Below the pieces are notes generated by a model. It did no database searches and was not told the origin of the DNA. It worked only from the letters and a program-made list of their open reading frames with translations. 64,000 bases of DNA, taken from the NCBI GenBank assembly GCA_009103225.1, contig RHPI01001037.1:1670551-1734550 (forward strand), in the 5' to 3' direction. Source of the stretch: Chlorokybus atmophyticus (lineage: Eukaryota; Plantae; Mesostigma and Chlorokybus algae). Shown piece by piece: positions 34,718 through 49,879 of the stretch; position 1 is the stretch's first letter, and each line of letters starts with the position of its first letter. The translations under genes and the position numbers were made by a program.

Positions 34718-37700
34718 TCACTTCTTTCTATTGTCAGGAGTAGGCGGCGAAGAGTACGGGAACGGGTTGCTGAACGGTACGGGATAGCAGAGTGTCTCTG
34801 CGTGATACTCGCCTTGCCCGTGTCCACCCTGAATGCATAGTTTGTCCTCCTCGCCCTCCACGCCCGACACAACAACTGCGGCATGTTCGAACCGGAAAGG
34901 TGACGTGTCCGACGAGGGCGCCTGAGTCCACGTGTTGGTGTTGGTGTCGTATTGCCACATGTCGTTGTACTCCTGCTTGAGACTGGACCCGCCGTGAATG
35001 TAGATGTATGAGCCGTACGCGACGGAGGCGTGGCTGTAGCGGCCAACATAGTTGTTGTTGTTGTTGTTGTTGTTGTTGTCGTCGGAGGAGAGTTGGAAGG
35101 TGTTGAGTTGCGTGAGCACGTTGTCGGCGGGGTTGTACGAGAAGAACTCGTTGGAGAAGCCGCGATCGGTGTACCCGCCGTAGATGTACACAACATCATT
35201 GGCCGACACAGCAATGCTGTGGCCAAAGCGCTTGCCCGCAACAGTGCCATCGACAGACGTGGGTGTAACAGACCGCCACTTGCGTGTGTCGATACTATAA
35301 ACCCACATGTCGTCGTAGAGAGCGTGTCCCGAGCGCCCACCGTACACTATCATCGTCCCATCCGACAACACACCCGCAGCGTGGTCGAAGCGTGCGGGTG
35401 GTACGCCTCCATCACCCTGCGGGCTGATGAATCGCCACGAAGAGGACGTGAAGGAGAACTCCCACACGTCGCTGAAGGCGTACGCGCTACGCTCACCGCC
35501 ATACACGTACATGGCGTCGTTGTACACGACAGCGGAGTGAGAGTAGCGAGGAGGGGGAGACACGCCGTCCTGAGGGGACACTTGCGACCACATGCGTTCA
35601 GGAACCCAATTCACTTGCGTGTCCTCGCCGTCGGCAGCGGGCTCAATCACAGCTCCCACTGTCGCGGGATGAACCTATACATCAAGGTAGAGGTTTCAGC
35701 ACGAGAGTTGTGTTGGGTGCACACGTGTAATGAACTCACTCACAAGGAGCATGCAAAGGTGCACATGAGCCCGCGCACGCAAGCTCGCACGCTCGCACGC
35801 GTACGATTGTGCACGCACATATGTCCACACGTACACATACCACTCTGGGTGTGCAATGTGTTTACCTTGATGACGGTGATGTCATCCCAGAATGCGTGTG
35901 CTGGGAGTACGTTGGGTACGCCCGTGAGGTCATCCAGTCCCGCTATGCCAGCAGAGATGAAGATCTTGTTGATGACAATAGGGTTGGGATCGCTATACAC
36001 GGGTACCCCATCAATTGACACAGTCGTGCCGGTTGAGTCACTGCGGACCTCAAACAGATGCCAGCCAGCGTTACGCGTCGCATTGTAAGCCGACTCCCAT
36101 GGCGACGCCGTGGCATATTTCCCAACAGTAGACAGCGTGTACACGCCGACAGCCGTGCTCTGCGTGTCGGGAAGGAGCCCAACATGCGTGTCGGGGAGAA
36201 GAAGTCTCTCCCCATCAGGTGTGCCTCCACACACATCCCAATCAGGACTGATGAAGTGGGCTGCTGTCTCAGAGTCAGAATCATAGAACTGAGCCCGAAG
36301 GATGAAGCTATCCGTCGGGTCATCGATATCAGCCTGAAGAGCACCAGCGAAGCCATACTTGGCATGAAGACTGTATCGGCCTGCATAAGGCAACTCCTCG
36401 CTGATATCAAACCCGTCAGCTGAGGGCGATATCACCCCGCAGGGAGCCGCGGGGACGAAAGGAGTCGAGGTGATATCGCCCTCGCCCTCGAAATCTTCGT
36501 AGAAAGCGAAGACGGTCTCGGGCTTGGATTCGGATATCACTGCGGGGTTGCCATAGAACATCTCGAGTGAGAATGACGTTGGGAGCACGTTGTCACCCGG
36601 GATGGAGACCCAGAATACGGTCTCGGGCTTGCCGCAGGTCCAGCTGTCGACAACGTGGTCGAGGATGGTTGATTGACCAGTGACACGGAAGACGATATCC
36701 GTGCATGCGCCTGACATTGAACCGCTAGCGACAAGCGACTCGGTGTCGAGCACAACTTGCAGCGTGGCGTCACCATCCAGTAGAGCATTGACTGTAGTAA
36801 CAACAACAAGAACACATCAGGGGTGAAGAGCAGTGTCGGTAACGCGTGTGCGTGTGCATGTGTGTGTCTACATGTGTTTGCGCGTATGTGTGTACTTACG
36901 TGTCACGCTGATGAGCTTGCGGTACGATAGGCTGTCATCAGCACCGCCGGAAGCACCTTCCAGCATCCACATATCATTGAGGTACGTCTTGTCATACAGG
37001 GCGCCGCCGAAGATGTAAATGCTGCCGTTGTATGCCGCAGCCGTGTGCTCGAAGCGCTTCGCTTGCAGCGGGAGCGTCTCATCATCTGTGAGAAGCTCAG
37101 CCCAACGTGCGGGAAGCACCTGTAGTGTGCTTTGAGGCGTGCTCAATAGTGAGATAAATAGGTTGTAAGGTCCTGGTGTCGGGGCCGTGTACACCACTTG
37201 GTACGCGCCCTGGCCGATAGACACCACCTCGGGGACCACCACGACGTTGTCCACGAGCATGTGGTTGATTGTGATCGCGCGGGTCACGTCATAGCTCGCA
37301 TCGCGGTCGACAATCACGTTGGCGTGCGGATCCATGGAGTCCTTTGCTACAACGATGAAAGAGGAGGGGACCCCGGCCACGGCCGTCGGGACCTGCCCAC
37401 CAACAAGGTCCAGACTAGCAAGGTCCCCGGCAGTAACCTCCAACGTAAAAGGTGCGGGGACAAGAGGCTCGTCGGGACGCGTGCCATCACCCAACAGAAG
37501 GACATTGAGAAGGTAGCTCCCGGCTTCATCCAGGTGGTATGTTGCCAACCAGAGGTCACCTAAGCAAGATGTGTCGCCCGGACCAAAGCGATGGTCACTA
37601 ACAAAGAGCCCATTGGGGAGCTCGAGGCTCAGAAGCTTGCGGAAGGGACCCTCTGGATCGGTGATGTTGGGTGTGTCGGACGGTGCGCCATCTATGTTGG

Positions 37701-40700
37701 GCACGCTCCCATAGCATTGGTCCTGTTCTGGGCAGTTGATGGCGGGCTCGTGTTGGACAGTGTCCTGCTTGTGGAGGATGGGGTACTCCACGGCGTCATG
37801 TGTGTCCTGGAAGTACTGCAAATCAAAGCGCGTGGTCTCGACGGCAAAGCGAGCCTCGCGACCAAGGTAGCAGTACTTGCACTCGTCCTTGGCCTGGATG
37901 AGAACATACTGGCCGAGGGACCCGGAGTACGCCCTCGAGTTGGTCAAACCACGGCCCGATGCCACGCTGAAGCGTGCACTCGGGGCTCCAACACCTTGGT
38001 TACGGAAGTCACCCTCCACGGGTGCAAAGGACCCGAGACCTCCCAACCATGAAGGTGGCCCGAGCGGTGCATTGAATGGGTCCAAGTCACCTTGGAGACA
38101 ATTGTTGTTGGAGTTGTCACCGACCCAACAATCGGCAGAGTAGCCCTTGGCGATGTCGCCCTGTCCTTCATTGAAAGGCCAGTAGCCGGCAATCTTGTCG
38201 AGCTCCATGTAAGGTGGGCAGTGCATCGTGTCGATGATCTCCTGTTGGGTGCGAGCCACCTTCCAGAGCTTGGCCTCGTCGATCATGCCCGTGAAGGCGT
38301 AGCCGATGTCAAGCGGGGCTTGCAGGTTGTTGGGTGGGATGCGCTTGGCGACATCATAGGACTTGGATGTAATCTCAACACCATCTTGATAGAGTGTGAA
38401 GCTGGTCTGGTTGTAGACCGCTGCAATGTGTGTCCATCCACCCGTGAGTTGGAATGGTGCACTCACTCTTCGCCACTCGCCATTGCCGGCGTACACGGTG
38501 GCCATCAGCGTGTCATAAGTCGGGGAGAACTTGAGGTCGTAGCTACGCGTGTCCACGCCAGCCTTATCCTGATCGTTCTTGTTGAACACGTAACGGAAGG
38601 TCGGGTTGATGTAATACGGCGTGCCCACATTGGCCAACAACCGCCTCCTTCCTGACTGCTCAGGTGGGGGCGGGGAGGGTGGAGGTGGCACGGGAGGGGG
38701 AGGTGAGGGTGGAGGTGGGCGTGGGGGCGGGGGGGGGGGGGGTGAGGGAGGAGGAGGAGAGGGTGTTACGCCACGCGGGCTCACCCAAGCCTCCATTGTG
38801 AAACCTGATGTGGTCAGACCCAACAGGCGCGTGTCCTCAACCTCCACGCTGGTCTGCCCGTTGAAGAAGAGGGACGTGCCAGCTGCCAAACACAATCAAC
38901 ACACATGAGACAACATATACACACCCGGTAAGTGATGACACTTTATCATTGGGCACATACCTGAAACTTCGACGCAGACGCCGTCAAGGAATGCTGCGGG
39001 GCCCTCAGTGGTGTTGATGGTGGCTGTGAGGACATAAGTGCCCATGACCTGTGGCGTGTAGGTGACAGTGTACGTGCCGTCTTCGTTGTCAACAACGTCG
39101 GCGACAATGTCGTGAGGACCCGTCAACGTGACCGTCACATTGTCGCCACCAGTAAACCTTAGACAACCGCTGTCATCCTTGGCTTGCACCTGTGAGGTTA
39201 CAACAAGCGCGTCAAAGGTAGGTACAACTACTTACAGTATGACTGTTGCCAGAGGCAATGATGCACTTACAGTGAATGAGCTCATGACACCGGCAGGGTT
39301 TGCATCTGAGACATTGGTCAGCGGGACGGTAGTGTTGGCAGAGGAAGGTCCGGCCATCACAAGTGTGACAAAGGATGCAGCGAGTTCATCATCCATGGTG
39401 ACGTTGACATTGTAGGGTCCGCATTGGCCGGGGACAGGCTGCACGGCGACGAGGTATGTGCCATCGTCCATGTCCACAACTTCAGCATCCACGGTGATGG
39501 AGTCATTGGCAGCAACCAAGACTTGGACTTGAAAGTTGTCGCCACCAGTGAGACGGCGAGCAAAACACTTGGTGCGTGCGGTGATTGAGAACACGCCAAC
39601 CCCATCAATGTCAATAGACTCCACGCCGGGTCCCACGAGCTCGGTTGCGTGAGGATCAGTTGAGTCATCATAAGAGATGTTGGCCCACAACTTATCTGCA
39701 CCCATGAGTGGCATAGCATCGCTCGTGTGGAAGTCCGCATAATCTGATGCAGCCGGACCCGTGCCTTCGCTCATGCTCCAAGCATGTGTGACATAATCAG
39801 ATCTAATAGGTGCGACTGCGCTGCTCTTAGGGCGAACCCACCCGAACCGGCTGAGTCTGTTGGGACACCTCACGCGATCCTTCATCACATATGGTGGCGT
39901 GAAGCCCGCTGTGGCAAACTCAACAGCAAAGTCCTCTGGCAGAGCCGACAGGTCCACGTCGTTGATGTTTCTACGCATGCCTTCATCCGTAATGGCCACG
40001 CCGGTGATGAGACCGTTGAAGCGGTTGGTCTCGCCCTCGGTGGAGTCTTGACCGATAAGAATTGGGACATCGGCTGCGAGGATGATGTCACGGGGGATGT
40101 CAACAAACACTTGCTTGTCCTTGAGGATGCCATCGATGTAGAAGAACATTGATACGCCGGTGGGACTGGGAACATACGTGGCCGCCACGTGCTGCCACCT
40201 GCCCTCGAGAACAGTTGCACGCCATGAGACCACCTCGCGGTACACCTCACAGGGCTCGCAGTCGCAACCAACCAACACCGCCAAATAAAGGCGGTCGTCC
40301 TTGATGCCAAAGGAAACAGAGACCAATCCATCTGAACAGAAGGTCATTCACAGAGTCAGTCATTACATGCTGTGATCAAACACATGTACCATTCACACAA
40401 CATGCACTAGGACCCATTAGTACCTGCATATGGTCTGGAGAGAATGGCCTGAGGTCCTTCCGTGCTGTAAGCGTAGATCCAGGCTTCGAGTGTAAAGCTG
40501 TCGGCCGCAAATGAGGCTGGACTGAAAACTGTGGCATTGGCGTCACGTGTGAAGTCGAGAGCGTACTCGCTAGTGAAGTACTGCGCCGTGAGCTCGCCCT
40601 CGGACAGAGCACGCGAGTAAACCCAAACCTCATCAACACGCCCATTCACCTGTCAATGGCGAGTAGCGACTTAGATCTGATTCAGAATGTGTGGGCAAGT

Positions 40701-43700
40701 CATGCATGACGGTTTTGCCAACATACCGCAGAGAGTATGGTTCCCTGCAGCAGGAACTCAGTGAATCCGGCGCCGATGAACTCCAGGATCGAGGCATCTG
40801 TGGAGTTCATAGCATTCTTTCCGTTGATGTAGACAGCGCCAGAGCCATCAGAGTACGTGCCCGCGATGTGCTTGTAGCAGCCAATGTGGGCACCCTGCAG
40901 CATCTGCAAAACATCCTCCTGCACAGATGAAAGATGTAAACAAGTATCTTACAATGAACTGGCCCAATGCATCCGAGGGACTTACTGTTGAGGCACTTAC
41001 CGACTGCTCATAGTCGACGCGGACCCACATGGAGATGGTGAAGTCCATGAAGGCCTCCGAGTCTTGAGACAGGTATGAAGCCGGCACGGGGAGAGTCAAG
41101 TTGGCACCACCCGTAAATGGACCAACAAGGACAGCTCCATTGTCAATAGCATTGCGATCCTGGGTAGAACAACAACCTCAATGTTAGGTGCCTGCTGCTT
41201 GGCAACATAATCTTAAGAGTGACAGTAAGCACTACTCTACCTCAACAAGTTGAGCAAGGCCATTGTCGCCGAGGACGTATATGCCGTGGCGGTCATTGCC
41301 GGAGGAGTCCGTAATGGTCATGACGTTGTTGTCGGCAAAGTTGGAGTCGGGCACGAAGTTGAATGTGTAATGGGCTTCGAGTCCTCGGTTGAGGTCAGTC
41401 ACGGAGGGCTGCACGAAGAACTGCGCTGGGAAGTCCTCCGGGATGTTGCTGACGTCCACATTGGGTGAGTTGGTGGCGAAGACTTGTCCCGGACCGAATG
41501 CGTCACCTTGAGGTGGCTGCGTGACGGTGAACACGTTGTTGCCGTGTGTCAACGGGCCCTCGGCGGGTGCTTGGACCCCGTTAAACACCGCTCCGAGCCA
41601 CTTTGTGGATGCAAGGTTGGTCGCTATTACGCTTACTTCCTGCCCGCCGGCAACATCGCCCACATCAGGGATGACCGCAAGCGTGTTGGGTGGGAGCCAA
41701 GGCGCCGCAGATTGAACGAAGTCCACATTGACTGCTGTCAAGACAGCTGCTGGGTCCGAGGCCAACGAGGCCACCTTGTTGTCATCATCCAAGCTTGTGA
41801 ACTTGTAATAAGCAGCAAGGCCTTCCTCATCACCCTGCAGGGACCCTCCCCAAGTATACTGAGCCACTTCATCTGAGGTGAGGGACTTGTTGAACACCAT
41901 CACTTCGTCAACGAGACCCGCGAAGAACTCGGAGGGGGCAGCCAGGTCAGAATTGCGGTAGTCCTGGCAGATGCTGAAGATACCCGTGATGTTGGGCTTG
42001 CTCGTCGTCGTGAAGCGGCTGGCAAGCTCGCCATCAACGTAGAACTGGCCCTCGCCCTCGCTGTCGATGCTAACAAACACGTGGTGCCATTGGTTGGGTA
42101 GAGCTGGAGGTCCCGTCTGTTACACACAGCCATGTCAGTGTCTGCAACTTTGGACTGGAGGCCCATATCATGCATACAAGTACACAGCAAACATGTGTAC
42201 CCGTGTGACATCAAGGATGGCATCGTCGTAGTAGAAGAAGCGGTGGCCGTCGTACATGACGAGGGCAGAGTTCTTGCCATTGTTGCTCTCAAATGACAAA
42301 ACAGTCGACACGGGCTCAACATCGCCCGAGCGGACTGCCCGGATGAGACCGCGCTTGTCACCCTAAGGGCATACAAGGAATAAGAACATGCTCATAGCTT
42401 GAGCGTATGACAACAACAACATCAACAACATACCTTTGAAAGGAGTGACCTGCGACGAACTGGCATCTCTTCTGCGGGTGCAGGCATGTCATAAGGCATG
42501 ACCCATGCACCAAAGGCATATCCATCTCCATTCAACAGGGCGTTGACCTCCGAGTCAACCGCAGTCATGTAGGAGTTGTCGCCACTGCACTCAAGCGCAG
42601 CCTGGAGCACAAACACATTCCGTGAGTCATGTGTGTGTCACAAAATGCTCTGTAACTGTGCATGCATGAGACATACTCCTCATGCACCGTTATGCCACTC
42701 GCCTCAGTAATCTCATAGACCATTGGGTTGGCGGTCAGAGGCGTGGCGCCAAAGAACAGCACCATTGGTTGGGCAGATGTGGGTGTGTTGCAGGTGAGCT
42801 CGCGTCCGTCGGGGTTTGTTGCGTTTGCGTCTGTCCTGAAGACTGCGGTCATGTTGTATGTTGCCAGTGACAGTTTTGTGCCACACGTGGGGTCAGATAT
42901 GCTCCCCGGCAACATATGCTGCATGGAGTCTCCCACAATCACGCCATCGGCACATTGCTCGGGATACCACCCTGGTTGGTTCTCCTGTTTCATGCAAAAC
43001 TGAGTAAGATGGCAGAGCGTTGCAACACAACTCCTGCGTGTATGCATGTGCTGGTTTCTACCTCGCAGATGGTGAAGTCTTGAACCACTTCCTTTACGCC
43101 CCATGTGCATGAGAGCCAAGGCGAGGGCGCAAAGTTGAAGCCCGCAATGTCCAGAGTCTCTCCACCCGTCAGCTTGCTCTTTGGTATGCTTTGGATTTCC
43201 TGTTGACATATGCGACAACACGTTCAACACAACCATCACCTACTCCATCTCCACTTCCTCCGGCAGCATGTTACCTCATAGTTCACGCCGTTAATGGTGT
43301 AGATCCAGCTAGGGTGCCACGGGACGGGTGTGAACTTGTAGTTCAATGTGCCTGTGGATGAGGTGACTGCCTGGCCATCTGGTGTACTGTCATCAACGTT
43401 CTCGCTGAAGCGGAGGTAAGCCAACACTTGGAGTTCTTCCCACATGGGTGATAGAGGAGAGGTCCACGCAGTGGAAGCCAACACGTCATCGTCGACCAAC
43501 ACGTTGAACCAACGCAACTCGTCAACCAGACCGGTGAAGTTGCCGGTTTTGAGGGTGACAACACCTGCATTGAGTGGCGTATGAGTTGATGAAGTTTACT
43601 GATTGGTATACTACAGTAAAGTACAACCGTACTCACCTTTCAAGTTGGTTGTTGCGCTGCTCTGGTACATGACAACACCGTCGACGTACAGGGTGGCAAC

Positions 43701-46700
43701 ACCTCCCACGGAGAGTGCGACGTAATGCCACTCGTTCACGCTCGACACATTTGCAGCATTGTACTGCTGACTGCAACCACAATGCAGCAGTTCTTCATAT
43801 GAGCACCATCAACGTTGAACCCAGCAGCAACAGCAACAGCAACACCACCACCACCAACAACAACATAAACAACATACCTGTCAAAGTTGGGTGAGTTCAC
43901 CACAAACTTGCCATAGTAGTACTGCACACTCTGTGTCGTGCCTGTTGTGCCACTAATCTTGAACAGTGTCTGCTCATCCTCGTCATTGTTGGGTTGCACC
44001 CACATTCCAACAGTCATTCCATCCCCAAGTATGCCTCCCACAACCACAGACACCTCCTCATCGCCAGTCAGCTCCAACACCTCCTCCATAAAGGTTTGCT
44101 TCTCGCCGGGGATGCCAACAAGCCCGTCGTTGGAAGCAGCAAAGAACATCTGCTCGGTTGCAAAAGGAGCGGGAGGAGATGCACAGGTGATGGAAGTCCA
44201 GCCACCGTAAATGTAGGTGGCTGAGCGAGAAGTCTGAAGGTTGCTCATGAAGTGGCCCTGTACACACAACAACGAGTCAAGCAGTGTTGTGTGTGTGTGT
44301 GTGTCAAGCAGTGTGTCACATGCATTGTTGTGACATGTATCTTACTGTTGCAGTGATGGCAGCTGAAACGTCATCCTGGCTGATGATGTTCCCGTTTGCG
44401 TTGGCGACCTCTGCAGGACCGAGTGACCCGACTGTGGTGTACACCCAATGGAATGGGTTGGCGAGGGCAAAGTACTTCTGGTTGGGTTGGGTGAAGTACT
44501 GATCGTAGTAACGGGGAGGTTCGTTGGACATGCGCGGGGTGTAGGGCATGTTGGTGCGGGCGTTGTCGTCAGCAAAGAGACCGCATGACAAGAAAGGGCT
44601 GCGAGCGAAGCCGACACCCGTGAACGTAACCATGTTGGACTCGCCGACGGGGTAAGCGTCCGAGTCGGGTGAAGGATGAGTTACAACCAACGGCGGGGCG
44701 AAGGGTGCGCCCGTGTAGGCATATCGCGAGTGGGAGGGGAAGGATCCCGCTGTACAGGACAACAAACAACTTCAGTAACATGATGCACTCAACTATCATC
44801 ACCTTCATTGGCTCTACTCACGTGCAAAGTAGATGTAGTCGTTGTCGAGGTCGAGGGTAGCGGTGGCGTTCTTGGCGTGGTTGCGCATGCCCGCAGTGTA
44901 GCCGGCCTTATCGGTAACATACAAGGAAACCGCAGGCACGTTGACGGGGTAGCTGGCCGAGCGGTCAAAAGCTGGCTCCTCCATCTACACATAATCACAC
45001 TCACACTCACACTCACACTCAAAATTACAGTCACAATCACAATCACGAATGCCAATGATGCATACCTGTAGGAGACGGCGGCGGCCTCCACCTTCATCAG
45101 CAGGTGGTGGAGGAGATGGAGGAGGAGGAGGTGGAGGAGAGGGTGCAGGGCCAGGTGGAGGTGGGCTAGGAGGCGGGGGGCTCGGTACCGCCGCTGCAAT
45201 GCCACAAGTGTTGGTGAATGTTGGGTTAGAGTTGTGTCACAAGACCAGAGTGCCTGCATACCAACCATCTTACCAGCGAGGCCTTCCTGGCACGGGTTGT
45301 TGAAGCGTGCCCACAACACGCGGCCGGCCGTGTAGTCGAGCTGTTCCCCGCGCGGGGCCTCGAGCTCGCGGGACGGGAGTGAAAGAGGCATCTTGAACAT
45401 GATGTCCTGTACACAAGACAACACGTCAGTCTCATGCAAGACAGTGTGGATGAGTGTATCAAGACCTCCTCCTTACGTGGAGCTCTGGCAGTGGGACGAA
45501 GCGGTTGTACACCACGACTTCATCAATGAACCCGTCGAAGGTCAGGAGGGTCCCGTCAGAGCACTGCATGCCAATCTTGAAGCTACAGCACATATTGGGA
45601 TCGCCGACAGCAACATCATCGGTGTCCACAAAGCCATCCATGCGCATGTGGTCGTCTGATCCATCCTCAGCATCTGCAGGGTTTCCATCACCAGAATCCC
45701 CACCGTCTGAGCCATCCTCATTATCATCTTGGAGAAGCCTGCAAGGATGTGTCATACCATCATGTTGGGATGTGATACAAGTGAGGTGGTTGAGAGATTG
45801 CCATGGTGATGTGTGTTTACCTTCGTCGGCCTCCACCTTCTTCAGGTGGAGGCGGTGCTGATGGAGGGGGTGGCTGGGCAATTGTGCACTTGATCGGGTA
45901 CATACCCGTGTCAAACTCAGCAACAACTTGGCCGTCAACTGCAAAGAGCCATGATACACAATTAAGCCACACATACGTACGCATCATGTCCTCATTGTCT
46001 CACGTCGTGAGAGTGAAACAGCAGACCCCATCGACTCACCTGCCAGGTTGCCGTGTCCCTCGCCGTCGATGGCCACCATGGCGTGGTGCCACATGTAGTC
46101 CTCGTACGTGCAGTTGGAGTACCACGTGTCGGTTCCATCAGTGAAACCAAACTGCTTGTTGGCAGTCTGCCAGATGAGAGCCATCTTGCATTCATACCTG
46201 ACCAACACCTATAACACACAAGTGGGATGGTCAGTATGACCCACACATACACACGTACACGCAAGGAGAGGATGTGTGTATCTCTACCTGATCTTCAGAG
46301 ACTGGTCTGTCTGTGATCTTCAATTGCACGCAGTAGAACGGCGTGGCTGTGATGAGGTACTGATCGAATGCATAAAAGCACACTTGTGATATGGCGGGGC
46401 GTGTGTCGAGTGCGGGATCCGCTGTTCCCGGCCACGTGAACGTGCGTGTGCCTCGCTCGCCAAGGGAGTTGTTGGGTGGGGTGAGGGACACGTACGTGTC
46501 GAGGAAAGCGCCCTCGGGGAGACCCGTCGTCTCGATGATAAGCATCGTACAGTCGTCGGTGTCCTCGGCGATCACATCGAAGTCGAAGTCCTCGCCGCGG
46601 TAATGTGTCAGCGTGGGCACGTTGTACTGCACAACACCAGAGGCGACATCAGATTAGACAGCCTTGAGGCAGGAGTTGACTGGTGCATCTGCGTGTACTT

Positions 46701-49700
46701 GCGTGTGGGTGTGCGTGTGCTTGTGCTTGTGCGTGTGTGCATAGCACGCGTGCGCGTTCGAGCACATACGCACACTCACATGCCTGACACAAAACACACG
46801 TATACGCGTGTCTGTTACAATAGAATGTCACCACACCTGGGAGAGGTCCAGAGCGGCAAACCAGTTCTCCACTCCCGGGTTCTTGTTTGGGTCGCCCGTT
46901 CGAATGAATGTGGGTAGGGTGTTGCCCTGGCAGGCAGAGGCCACAGGGACAACGCTGTTGCCCGACGTCTGTCCGCAGGTGGCATTGCCCGTACCAAGGT
47001 TGAGCGGGTCAGGTGTACACATCGTGAAGTCACCGTCACCGAGGCCGCAGATGGTACACTCTTGGTTACCGTAAGTACCATCAACATCTGCGTGTAAACA
47101 CAAGGTCAGTATGGGACAACAACAACAACAACAACAATTACTACTACTACTACTACTGCTTACTGTTGAAGGTTGGGGTTCCGGCGATGTTGTTCTTGCA
47201 GTTGTGGTTGCAGAAGTTGAGGTTGCCGTCATATAGGTAGAGCATGAAGTCGAGCGGCACCTTCACTTTGCTGTCGCGGACCATCACCACCATGTTGTAC
47301 AGTCCACCACGCAGCTTCGTGCCCGGACCCGTCGTCCACGTCTGCACACAACAAGCGTCACAACCCACACGCAAACCCGACACAATATTGCCACATACAC
47401 ACATACACTCATCTCCCAACCTGCCAGACGACGAGTCCGGGTACTTTAGCGCTCGGGTCGAACGAGTTGCTCGTCTGCGGCGTTTGTTGCGGCGTTCGAT
47501 CGTTGGGACACGCATTATCAGGTTGGCCATCTCCGTTCCTATCCTGCGTGTACATGTTGGAGTTGCAGTCGAAGTTGCCGTAGTACTGGTTCTTGTTGAA
47601 CACGCCGTCGGCCCTCGAACGCATGATGCCGCCCATCTCCATCTGATCTCCGAAGGTGAACTGCAGGTTGCGGTTGTCGACGGGGTCGAGGTCGTAAGCC
47701 GCGATCTGGAACTTGGCGTAGTTGGGGTACGACACGTGCATCACGGGCATCACGGGGATCTGGGAGGCGATCGGGGAACGGTTGCCGTCGCCAGTCACCG
47801 AAACTGTGATCTCCAACCTGAATCGTCCCTGTAATACAGTACTTTGCTTTTACTACAAGCGTCACACCCTTCTCAATACAGTGTTTGATGTACTTGAGGA
47901 GTTTGTGTGTGTGCGTGCGCGCAAGTTATACACACACACGCGCACGCACATACATACGCGTGTGTACATGCGTGCACGTGCGTGTCCGTTTGTGTACCTG
48001 GGCGTTGTTGTTTAGCCAGTAGTCTAACTCGGAGGGACACACGCCTGGGTTGGTGTTCCATGGCACGCTGCACTCGTATATGCGATCTCCACCGGTGTAG
48101 AAGGCTGTGTACACTGGCGCGCCTGACCCCGGGTAATTGGTTGGAAGCGCCGTCTGCGGCCTATTCATAACCGAGCCTTTAGCACATATTGTGGCAAACT
48201 TGCACGACAAAAGCAAGTGTGAGGGTGTTATCTCCTTACGTGTAGGTTTTGACCCAACGCGACACGCCTCGCACATAGTTGCCGGTAATGAGGTTGCTGC
48301 TGGCATCCACTGTGTCGAGTTGAAGGATGACATTGTCCGCCAAGCCGTCACCATAGAAGAACCCGTACACCTATGCAAAGCATAATGTTGTTCATTGCAA
48401 TTGTAATGTAAATGTAACTGTTGTACACTATCACAGTATGTGTGCGTGTCTGTGTGTGTCTGTTTACCTGAGACCAGGGCGCGCACAAGTTCTTGTTTGT
48501 GGCGTACGCGGTGTTGCTGCTCCCGCAGTCTGCTGGCAGCGTGCCGGACGGCCCCGGATAATCGCAGTAGAAGGGTGTTGGGCACTCCTTCACAATGGTA
48601 TTATCCTGCAGACAAACAACAATCCAACCATGAGCATGCCGAACACAGACACACACACGTGCTTGCACATACACGCACCCACACATACATATACCCCCCC
48701 CCCCCCNTTAGGGTTTTACCCCCCCTTACTGCTGACTGCCTCTTGCTCATTGTTGACCTTACCCGATTAAACATATGCGTTTTCCCCTCTCCTTTGTGTG
48801 CTCCTCTATGCAGCTTCCCATTTCCGCTACGGCACCATCAGTTGGATCCCCTTGCAAGGCCCCAACGCCGACGGCTCCTTCTCCGTCCAGTTCACCTTCC
48901 GCGCCGCCTTCCGTCGCAACTACGAGTGGGGCAAGTGGTTCCGGGAGCAGTGGCAGATCACTTCCTCATCCACCTACCCGGACCCATACCCCCCCACCCC
49001 CCCACCCCACCCCCACTTACCGAGTACACGCTATACGGGAACTTCACATAGAAATATTGTTGCTGCGGCACGATGGTCGGCGCAATATTCTGGCACCCCG
49101 CTCCATTACTCGCTAGCGTTGACCCAGCTGGACACGTGAAGCACCCCGCTTGATTCGGGTTGGTCGCACAGTTACTCGGCACAGTCCTCCAGAACGTCTC
49201 CGTCCCATGCCAGTTGAGTTGGGTGTTTGGGTCCGGGTAGGTGGATGAGGAAGTGATCTGCCACTGCTCCCGGAACCACTTGCCCCACTCGTAGTTGCGA
49301 CGGAAGGCGGCGCGGAAGGTGAACTGGACGGAGAAGGAGCCGTCGGCGTTGGGGCCTTGCAAGGGGATCCAACTGATGGTGCCGTAGCGGAAATGGGAAG
49401 CTGCATAGAGGAGCACACAAAGGAGAGGGGAAAACGCATATGTTTAATCGGGTAAGGTCAACAATGAGCAAGAGGCAGTCAGCAGTAAGGGGGGGTAAAA
49501 CCCTAAAACCTTCCCTACTTGGCCCCCCTGCGCTGCTTTCCCAACTGGTTCCAACTTAATTTTGTAATGCAAGACCGAGGCTTGCTTGCCCCCAGCCACT
49601 GGCTGCTATGCCACAGCAAGCTGCTACTGACAAGTTTTATGCAACATGTGCATGTATTGCTGGTCTGTCGTGTTAGTAACTAGAGTTGTTTCATGCTGTG

Positions 49701-49879
49701 ATGGCTTGCAGCTGTCTGCTCTCCCCCCTCCCCNNNNNNNNNNNNNNNNNNNNNNNNNNNNNNNNNNNNNNNNNNNNNNGGGGGGGGGGGCAATGCACGT
49801 AATGCACGTACGCACCTGCGGCAAGTTGTAAGAAGGCTAGAAGCAGCAGCCCCAGAAGCTGCCTCAGTGGGGCCGCCAT
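34718..49879 (-). CDS. Giant secreted multidomain protein (~3,800 aa, ~31 exons): signal peptide, Sib-like N-terminal module, Ig-like domain, ~6 LamG/ConA-like domains, IPT/TIG-like and filamin-type Ig repeats, Kelch propeller with DUF2341-like insert
   Basis: Exon 1 49879-49816 MAAPLRQLLGLLLLAFLQLAA with GT donor. Exon 2 49400-49021 ASHFRYGTISW. LamG motifs FTMEAWV/WTHIAAVY/FTGMIDEAKLW and FTLEAWIY/WQHVAATY/FNG. Filamin motifs VQAKDDSGCLRFTGGD...DNEDGTYTVTYTP. Kelch motifs RYSHSAVVYNDAMYVYGG...W. Long open exons 38883-36900, 36782-35867, 35685-34718. No C-terminal transmembrane helix seen. Confidence 0.85.
48708..49506. repeat. 279-bp inverted duplication (arms 48708-48986 and 49228-49506) copying the exon-2 acceptor region of the giant gene
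   Basis: The arms are exact reverse complements as far as I can read, and the ORF track shows the same peptide ASHFRYGTISW... on both strands. The left arm starts right after an N at 48707. Confidence 0.92.
49734..49779. other. Assembly gap (46 N) flanked by poly-C and poly-G runs, inside intron 1 of the giant gene
   Basis: Seen directly. Confidence 0.97.

Follow-up and report, generated by a model that had tools for sequence, protein, structure and literature searches.

Does a green alga carry the N-terminal head of the Sib (similar-to-integrin-beta) adhesion proteins, and if so, on what kind of protein? The question was raised by a gene on the minus strand of a 64,000-nucleotide stretch of Chlorokybus atmophyticus DNA (contig RHPI01001037.1, positions 1,670,551 to 1,734,550; this whole stretch is called the window below), in which a preliminary description, made from the sequence alone, had placed a module resembling the N-terminus of Dictyostelium Sib proteins. 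We hold with good confidence that a giant secreted protein with a Sib-type head has its N-terminal ~690 residues encoded in this region, and that it shares the head of Sib without being a Sib receptor. Judged from sequence, the head is homologous to the SibA-E head as Pfam defines it and to one that hundreds of bacterial surface or secreted proteins carry. In Sib receptors an extracellular VWA domain is combined with one glycine-rich membrane helix and a cytosolic tail whose NPxY motifs bind talin; the window protein was not counted among them because it has no VWA, no membrane helix and no NPxY tail.

The gene was divided into the parts listed below using spliced contigs of run X1, a public run that is apparently a transcriptome. 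These contigs gave GT..AG introns at 49401-49815, 47342-47420, 46627-46836 and 46209-46287 and five more downstream, and the other exon limits come from splice-site inspection. In the list, SIBA-E_N (PF24907) and Ig_SIBA-E_2nd (PF24908) are the two Sib-named Pfam models, P0001 is a 786-residue C. atmophyticus protein, P0022 is a Chlorokybus paralogue and P0069 is a Bacteroidota protein.

49816-49879, minus strand: exon 0, which supplies the start codon and the signal peptide MAAPLRQLLGLLLLAFLQLAA; the final base of the exon finishes the Ala codon before SHFRYG, and the joint 49400/49816 is present in a transcript
49401-49815, minus strand: intron 0, GT..AG, holding an assembly gap (N run 49734-49779)
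49021-49400, minus strand: exon 1, mature N-terminus SHFRYGTISW...FTFRAAFRRNYEWG, SIBA-E_N strands 1-2, after which a Cys-rich insert begins
48468-48605, minus strand: exon 1b, rest of the Cys-rich insert (DNTIVKECPTPFYCDYPG...CAPWSQ), corresponding to P0001 155-200 at 76% identity; a loose transcript-contig end joins it to exon 2
48240-48370, minus strand: exon 2, where the SIBA-E_N core restarts (VYGFFYGDG...); maps to P0001 201-243 and P0022 191-232
47998-48160, minus strand: exon 3, SIBA-E_N core (YTAFYTGGDRIYEC...LNNNAQ) with a short Cys loop; paired by hhalign with the bacterial CCRLSSLNN block
47421-47828, minus strand: exon 4, last SIBA-E_N strand GRFRLEITVSV, NRSP linker, first half of domain 2 (FQIAAYDLDP...LQFTFG) and a long loop
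47164-47341, minus strand: exon 5, second half of domain 2 (GLYNMVVMVRD...VPLDFMLYLY), then CNHNC; its columns match the bacterial LYN..VVTD/VDFII block in hhalign
46837-47087, minus strand: exon 6, Cys-rich linker ending in GNTLPTFI; maps to P0001 496-576 and forms short strands and a helix in the structural model
46288-46626, minus strand: exon 7, domain 3, a He_PIG-type Ig-like sandwich; its counterpart in the alignment of the family profile is the He_PIG domain of P0069 (246-334)
from 46208, minus strand: exon 8 onward, splice joints traced down to 44257
34718-46208, minus strand: remainder of the gene, in which several LamG_3 domains and filamin repeats, DUF2341 and the C-terminal Kelch propeller are separated by proline-rich linkers

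The module region contains eight GT..AG introns, and the nine exon translations mapped onto P0001 collinearly and abutting one another, with 52-84% identity per exon. The translations also mapped onto proteins of Mesostigma, Chloropicon, Cymbomonas and Pseudoscourfieldia. Once the signal peptide is removed, the mature protein starts with (A)SHFRYGTISW, which is position 1 of the SIBA-E_N profile, so that the head stands at the very N-terminus.

A Pfam search with 24,736 models was carried out exon by exon, and the N-terminal exons touched three models only, all of them weakly. Exon 1 matched SIBA-E_N with 14.3 bits (E 0.041, profile 1-29 of 119), exon 5 matched Ig_SIBA-E_2nd with 13.9 bits (E 0.06, profile 64-102 of 117), and 17 residues of exon 5 matched the zf-FLZ zinc finger at E 0.07; the two Sib-named matches are collinear. 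The gathering thresholds of these two models are 28.1 and 27.8 bits, respectively, and the window scores were therefore taken as leads only. The window gene escapes the thresholds because its domain is broken up by introns and by a lineage-specific insert. In the window, SIBA-E_N is put together from ~45 residues at the start of exon 1, from exons 2 and 3, and from 11 residues at the start of exon 4, a composition that follows from the alignment of exon 2 with the start of the second SIBA-E_N piece in P0022; the rest of exon 1 and the whole of exon 1b make up the inserted Cys-rich segment. Exon 4 carries half of domain 2, which is cadherin-like and, by hhalign, of the Ig_SIBA-E_2nd type, and exon 7 gave no direct Pfam match.

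Higher scores were obtained with a profile of seven bacterial modules (A5). Exon 1 reached 25.2 bits at positions 3-48 (best of 500 shuffles, 10.2) and exon 4 reached 24.2 bits at positions 107-168 (best of 500 shuffles, 6.8), while exons 2, 3 and 5 fell at positions 46-77, 89-99 and 199-234, collinear and individually not significant. A word-index search with exon 4 found no match among proteins of 75-238 residues, a blank of little weight, and a feature search of the ESM Atlas with exon 1 gave scores of <=0.86 and no named family.

Relatives of the head in algae and bacteria

When 1.84 billion representative proteins were scanned with exon 1 (phmmer/HMMER), 33 proteins were obtained at E<=0.001. 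With few exceptions the match in these begins 20-50 residues into the protein, right after the signal peptide. This position is common to almost all relatives, algal and bacterial alike. The named relatives belong to the green algae Chlorokybus, Mesostigma, Chloropicon, Cymbomonas, Pycnococcus and Pseudoscourfieldia, and further searches added Pterosperma, Tetraselmis and Prasinocladus. The curated SIBA-E_N threshold was passed by P0022 (37.7 bits, E 2.3e-9, in two stretches), by P0011 of Cymbomonas (33.3 bits) and by P0036 of Pseudoscourfieldia (28.2 bits); P0009 of Mesostigma fell just under it with 28.0 bits, and P0001, the closest proxy of the window protein, scored 16.4-16.7 bits. SIBA-E_N was present at E<=0.1 in 9 of the 17 family members, and no other family was common to them. 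The passing relatives match the model in two pieces, profile 1-29 at the N-terminus and profile 43-118 some 150-200 residues further on, the latter corresponding in P0022 to residues 193-272. Some algal relatives already bear PF24907 as a precomputed Pfam label, so the domain is visible in databases for algae, where it has apparently not been discussed.

The motifs by which the module had been recognised were all recovered on the minus strand in the order given (10 of 10), and the span assigned to them, 46290-49400, agrees with the start of exon 1 at 49400 and the end of exon 7 at 46288. Nine of them were located by a sequence scan:

49401-49369, minus strand: motif ASHFRYGTISW
49329-49297, minus strand: motif VQFTFRAAFRR
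48111-48079, minus strand: motif YTAFYTGGDRI
47783-47742, minus strand: motif NRSPIASQIPVMPV
47711-47691, minus strand: motif FQIAAYD
47305-47273, minus strand: motif GLYNMVVMVRD
47260-47240, minus strand: motif VPLDFML
47212-47198, minus strand: motif CNHNC
46926-46903, minus strand: motif GNTLPTFI

The tenth, LNNNAQ/GRFRLEITV (LNNNAQGRFRLEITV), is split in the DNA by the intron between the end of exon 3 (47998) and the start of exon 4 (47828), and it runs uninterrupted in the proteins of the relatives, P0001 included. The quoted motifs are conserved blocks of one family, far beyond chance.

The connection with the Sib-named models became clear in bacteria. P0069, a substrate of the type IX secretion system with a CHU_C domain that is close to a Pontibacter oryzae locus, matched SIBA-E_N with 41.7 bits at residues 20-127 and Ig_SIBA-E_2nd with 37.8 bits at 150-227, followed by He_PIG at 246-334. 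SIBA-E_N scores of other bacterial proteins were 49 (P0073), 44 (P0075), 35.4 (P0072) and 29.4 bits (P0079). An alignment of algal heads (A1) was compared with P0069 by hhalign, which returned a probability of 98.3% and an E-value of 1.9e-14 over 248 columns, collinear across all three domains; against A5 the probability was 99.8% and the E-value 4.1e-29 over 273 columns, with HFRYGxISW, FGDG, LNNN, NRSP, DPD and VDF as common motifs. The PF24908 stretch of P0069 (residues 150-227) was also matched column by column by the algal profile, as was A5. The preliminary description had proposed a profile comparison with bacterial homologues, and its claim of a Sib-like N-terminal module is supported by this ~270-column match together with the two collinear Sib models and the three relatives above threshold.

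The same three-domain head occurs at the mature N-terminus of P0069 and of the TIGR01451/DUF11 repeat proteins P0073, P0075 and P0076, where it precedes variable Ig or lectin modules as in the algal protein. These bacterial proteins differ by a compact domain 1 without the insert and by their downstream and secretion modules (Big_12/13, DUF11, CHU_C). P0073, P0075 and P0076 contain THFRFGHFSW, CCRLSSLNN, NRSPVSSLVPIV and PVDFFL, blocks nearly the same as those that the preliminary description attributes to SibA. Cornillon and colleagues reportedly described bacterial-like repeats, R1-R4, in Sib in 2006. Searching with the N-terminal motif in one genome per bacterial or archaeal species, we confirmed 119 prokaryotic relatives, mostly from Bacteroidota; Planctomycetota, Myxococcota, Gammaproteobacteria, Actinomycetota, Chloroflexota, Acidobacteriota and a few archaeal metagenome-assembled genomes (MAGs) also carry the module, which is thus mainly bacterial.

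The fold of the head was predicted with AlphaFold2 (AF2) for residues 30-700 of P0001 from a 44-sequence alignment. The model had a mean predicted local distance difference test score (pLDDT) of 81.7 and a predicted template-modelling score (pTM) of 0.85, and consisted of several sandwiches, all beta. The ectodomains of contactin, protocadherin and cadherin that Foldseek retrieved from the PDB for the whole head had E-values of 1e-6 to 1e-3 and low TM-scores, which indicates that these predicted matches reflect a generic tandem Ig or cadherin-like array. Cadherin and protocadherin ectodomains are likewise a string of beta-sandwiches and were the best Foldseek matches to the whole head, with insignificant sequence matches at the junction (E 0.3-0.6) and TM-scores of ~0.12. 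Domain 1 alone (pLDDT 81.3) matched many Ig-like sandwiches over ~100 residues with Z <=5.2; its N- and C-terminal strands make the sandwich, and the insert was left unmatched in Foldseek and VIA-align. A PDB sequence search with the family profile gave insignificant protocadherin and IgA-receptor matches only, and no sequence-related solved structure. Structure comparison, which had also been suggested, thus upheld a beta-sandwich head and yielded generic matches in place of a specific fold relative.

By shape, a search of the atlas with the whole head (model m9524d683d56a) found Bacteroidota secretion substrates; a further atlas search, made with the proxy head after the exon 1 feature search, found bacterial Ig, He_PIG and PKD clusters only. 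The search by shape also returned zona-pellucida proteins of echinoderms, EGF proteins of molluscs and rotifer proteins, the last at TM 0.46-0.50 over ~350-380 residues, and a rotifer cluster had been touched by the exon 1 feature search as well. These animal matches, at TM 0.4-0.5, are a lead only, according to which the head may occur in invertebrate animals.

Several points weigh against a Sib-type head. The window exons stay below the gathering thresholds of both Sib-named models, Ig_SIBA-E_2nd is absent at E<=0.1 from the full-length algal relatives, and the link to Sib runs through Pfam's models and bacterial intermediates. The structure is a model of P0001, a 76%-identical paralogue, and not of the window's spliced protein, and the fold searches gave generic Ig or cadherin matches only. 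Taken together, the sub-threshold scores, the generic beta-sandwich matches of Foldseek and VIA-align and the insignificant protocadherin matches of the PDB sequence search could be read as the resemblance that tandem Ig- or cadherin-like domains show to one another in general, rather than as a specific relationship with the Sib head. We regard such a reading as very improbable. Apart from zf-FLZ at E 0.07, the N-terminal matches among all the Pfam models were the two collinear Sib models; three relatives pass the curated threshold; hhalign aligned the algal and bacterial profiles at E 4e-29 with common motifs; and the exon scores lie far over those of shuffled sequences.

Downstream architecture and proposed role

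A head of the Sib type stands here on a protein of another build. The two domain types found in Dictyostelium discoideum SibA-E, as represented in Pfam, follow the signal peptide directly and in the same order, and the blocks HFRYGTISW, GDG, LNNN, NRSP and VDF of the SibA-E models match in relatives; in contrast to the Sib-built Pfam profile, the algal domain 1 contains a Cys-rich insert of ~125 residues. Further on, the VWA, membrane helix and cytosolic tail of Sib are replaced in the window protein by LamG, filamin, DUF2341 and Kelch. This replacement had been noted in the preliminary description for LamG, filamin and Kelch, and it was confirmed by Pfam on the downstream open stretches (several LamG_3, filamin repeats, DUF2341 and a C-terminal Kelch propeller) and by the C-terminal translation. 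No VWA was found on those downstream open stretches, among which not all small exons were scanned, nor in full-length P0004 and P0006. The last exon encodes the Kelch propeller and ends in ...DNRKK-stop with no hydrophobic segment, and the scanned relatives of more than 3,000 residues showed no membrane helix beyond the signal peptide.

Mesostigma P0004 and Chloropicon P0006, which were scanned in full, have LamG, filamin and Kelch in the same arrangement. Head and insert alike recur in the green-algal giants of Mesostigma (P0004, P0009), Chloropicon (P0006), Cymbomonas (P0011, P0023) and Pycnococcus and Pseudoscourfieldia (P0035, P0036), whose annotation goes no further than 'LamG-like jellyroll fold domain-containing protein' or 'kelch repeat/IPT-TIG domain-containing protein'; P0004, P0006, P0009, P0011, P0023 and P0036 have no membrane anchor. 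The window gene has the head with the insert, LamG, filamin and a C-terminal Kelch and encodes a secreted product, and is assigned by its sequence to this green-algal head/LamG/Kelch family, in which it groups with P0001, P0002 and P0004. A known head with a lineage-specific insert is here joined to a downstream architecture that is new.

The N-terminal 660 residues contain 22 cysteines, which fits a predicted extracellular, disulfide-bonded protein. LamG and Kelch modules are common binders of carbohydrates or proteins. We propose that, after cleavage of the signal peptide, a rigid three-domain beta-sandwich head would be directly exposed at the mature N-terminus, composed of a SIBA-E_N-type domain 1 with its insert, an Ig_SIBA-E_2nd-type domain 2, a Cys-rich linker and a He_PIG-type Ig domain 3. 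The protein would belong to the extracellular matrix or the mucilage, and the head would most likely be its distal, binding end because it is free at the N-terminus, as in Sib and in the bacterial proteins with an Ig-repeat stalk, and the lectin-like LamG and Kelch modules would bind glycans. Calcium might be held at the junction of domains 1 and 2, where the NRSP and AYDxD motifs faintly recall the inter-domain calcium sites of cadherins. By analogy, the most likely role is that of a multivalent matrix, mucilage or wall-associated protein with a putative adhesive or cross-linking function. The family thereby provides candidate matrix and adhesion proteins for Chlorokybus and Mesostigma, lineages informative on the evolution of the streptophyte cell surface and of multicellular packets. 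We know of no structure or ligand of the Sib head, and its algal and bacterial carriers offer a comparative handle on its binding partner.

A polyproline run followed by GGGRRRLL or SGRRRLL recurs on the minus strand of the window gene, at ~45000-45130 and ~38650-38760. The same proline-rich basic ending lies at or near the C-terminus of the shorter paralogues P0022 (...PPPEDGGGRKLLS), Mesostigma P0057 (...PPAPEGGKKKRRL) and P0059, which fits conserved linker or processing sites.

The insert, the age of the family and the origin of the head

The distance from HFRYG to GDG was 148-283 residues in the algal proteins in which both motifs were found, and 34-77 residues in 55 of 56 prokaryotic loci with both motifs, the remaining locus having 197. 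The difference lies in the ~125-residue Cys-rich insert inside domain 1. Since the bacterial domain and the Sib-built Pfam profile are both compact, the insert is taken as a derived character of the algal clade.

A quick, unrooted maximum-likelihood tree was built from 106 modules and 254 columns, and included neither fragmentary proteins, nor proteins with no recognisable N-terminal motif, nor the window's own protein, nor Sib. All 22 eukaryotic rows, from algae and marine eukaryotes, fell on one side of a branch with a Shimodaira-Hasegawa-like approximate likelihood-ratio (SH-aLRT) value of 99. Within this clade two paralogue groups were found, each with streptophyte and chlorophyte members, and P0001, P0002 and Mesostigma P0004, the nearest relatives of the window gene, belong to the first. 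As both groups mix streptophytes and chlorophytes, an early green alga already possessed the family in duplicated form, and on this tree the duplication predates the chlorophyte-streptophyte split. The phylogeny that the preliminary description had called for thus gave one eukaryotic clade with two old paralogue groups.

Three marine picoeukaryote proteins, P0063 (L001 10001-14653), P0065 and P0122, are of another kind. They measure ~1,500 residues, possess a Sib-type head with the algal insert, and lie inside the algal clade. P0065 has a VWA at 816-999 (37.6 bits), and P0063 and P0065 each have one membrane helix (AIAGGVF) and a ~135-residue cytosolic tail with a conserved DSPY(I/V)SESEII motif. 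For P0122, for which a Pfam scan only was made, the live scan showed SIBA-E_N alone and the precomputed label adds VWA. The Tara Oceans contigs of these proteins carry compact eukaryotic, green-alga-like genes (eIF3g, ribosomal L11, starch-branching enzyme, triose-phosphate translocator), and the organism behind them is probably a prasinophyte. By their domain order, the three proteins would represent a Sib receptor layout outside Amoebozoa.

How then did the head come to be in both green algae and dictyostelids? The account that fares best, to which we assign nearly an even chance, is that each took it separately from bacteria, the algae anciently. It is consistent with the broad spread of the module across many bacterial phyla and with the scores on the Sib-derived Pfam models, which are best for bacterial proteins, up to 49 bits and above any algal protein; bacterial-like parts in Sib have, moreover, been noted before (PMC2651865, PMC9453864). 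On this account, however, the relatives with VWA and membrane anchor inside the algal clade would have to be a convergent architecture.

Vertical inheritance from an early eukaryote common to Amoebozoa and Viridiplantae, with loss from most other lineages, appears unlikely to us, if still a serious contender. It would suit a family older than the chlorophyte-streptophyte split, and the marine picoeukaryote relatives combine head, VWA, one membrane helix and cytosolic tail as Sib does; a wider distribution among eukaryotes is hinted at by the structure-based matches in rotifers, echinoderms and molluscs. Against it, the Pfam profile based on Sib has the compact form of the bacterial domain and no algal insert, and the patchy distribution needs many losses. 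No amoebozoan protein, Dictyostelium included, appeared among the matches of the exon 1 scan and of two alignment-based word searches, which scored the 8,000 candidates sharing most words and gained algal and bacterial relatives; this is no evidence of absence.

A recent transfer of the module from a bacterium into Chlorokybus, which its 119 prokaryotic loci, mostly in Bacteroidota, might have suggested, is hardly credible in view of the eight introns in the module region, the single eukaryotic clade with its two mixed paralogue groups and the insert that the whole algal clade shares and prokaryotes lack. The preliminary description had left open an ancient module shared between Amoebozoa and green algae or a horizontal acquisition, and of the latter the mainly bacterial nature of the module stands and a recent arrival in Chlorokybus does not.

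Between ancient acquisition from bacteria and vertical descent, a broader picture may be sketched, which we consider possible and put forward tentatively: that the Sib head is no amoebozoan speciality, and that the green lineage has carried both a giant secreted LamG/Kelch form and a Sib-like type I receptor form since before the chlorophyte-streptophyte split. If this were true and the receptor form were homologous to Sib over its full length, Sib-type receptors would be an old eukaryotic invention or an equally old bacterial gift, predating the integrin machinery of animals and amoebae.

Sib proteins have been described as 'Dictyostelium only' (PMC2651865) and as 'Amoebozoan-specific', the sole eukaryotic proteins with their bacterial-like extracellular repeats (PMC9453864). 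No paper was found that ties Sib or 'integrin beta-like' proteins to Chlorokybus, and a literature search for SibA and green algae gave one seemingly relevant result, PMC2651865, the source of the former statement. Contrary to these surveys, the sequences reported here indicate that the Sib-type head is not limited to amoebae. It is an old, conserved part of green-algal extracellular proteins that is also present on hundreds of bacterial surface proteins.

Two-domain heads were also seen in MAGs labelled as archaeal (L011 and L032; Nitrosopumilaceae, Thermoplasmatota), nested among bacterial sequences in the tree. These occurrences could be due to transfer or to binning error.

Assembly and transcript details

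Prokaryotic contamination was ruled out as a source of the locus by the GT..AG introns and the spliced transcripts. A pseudogene was likewise ruled out, as all exons are open, their phases fit and the gene is transcribed.

The first two motifs occur on the plus strand too, at 48813-48917, because intron 1 holds an inverted copy of the start of exon 1. This copy, 286 nt long at 48708-48993 (plus strand), repeats 49221-49506 with 99% identity, spans the sequence of the intron 0/exon 1 boundary and lies beside a single N (48707) and a G-run. No transcript contig gave depth over 48776-48974, and the copy is probably an assembly artefact at a gap and not coding sequence.

In record 6 of X2, another run from the same study, a short contig joined 47280-47299 with 48035-48059 at 95-99% identity, leaving 101 loose letters; it is probably the transcript of a paralogue rather than an alternative splice.

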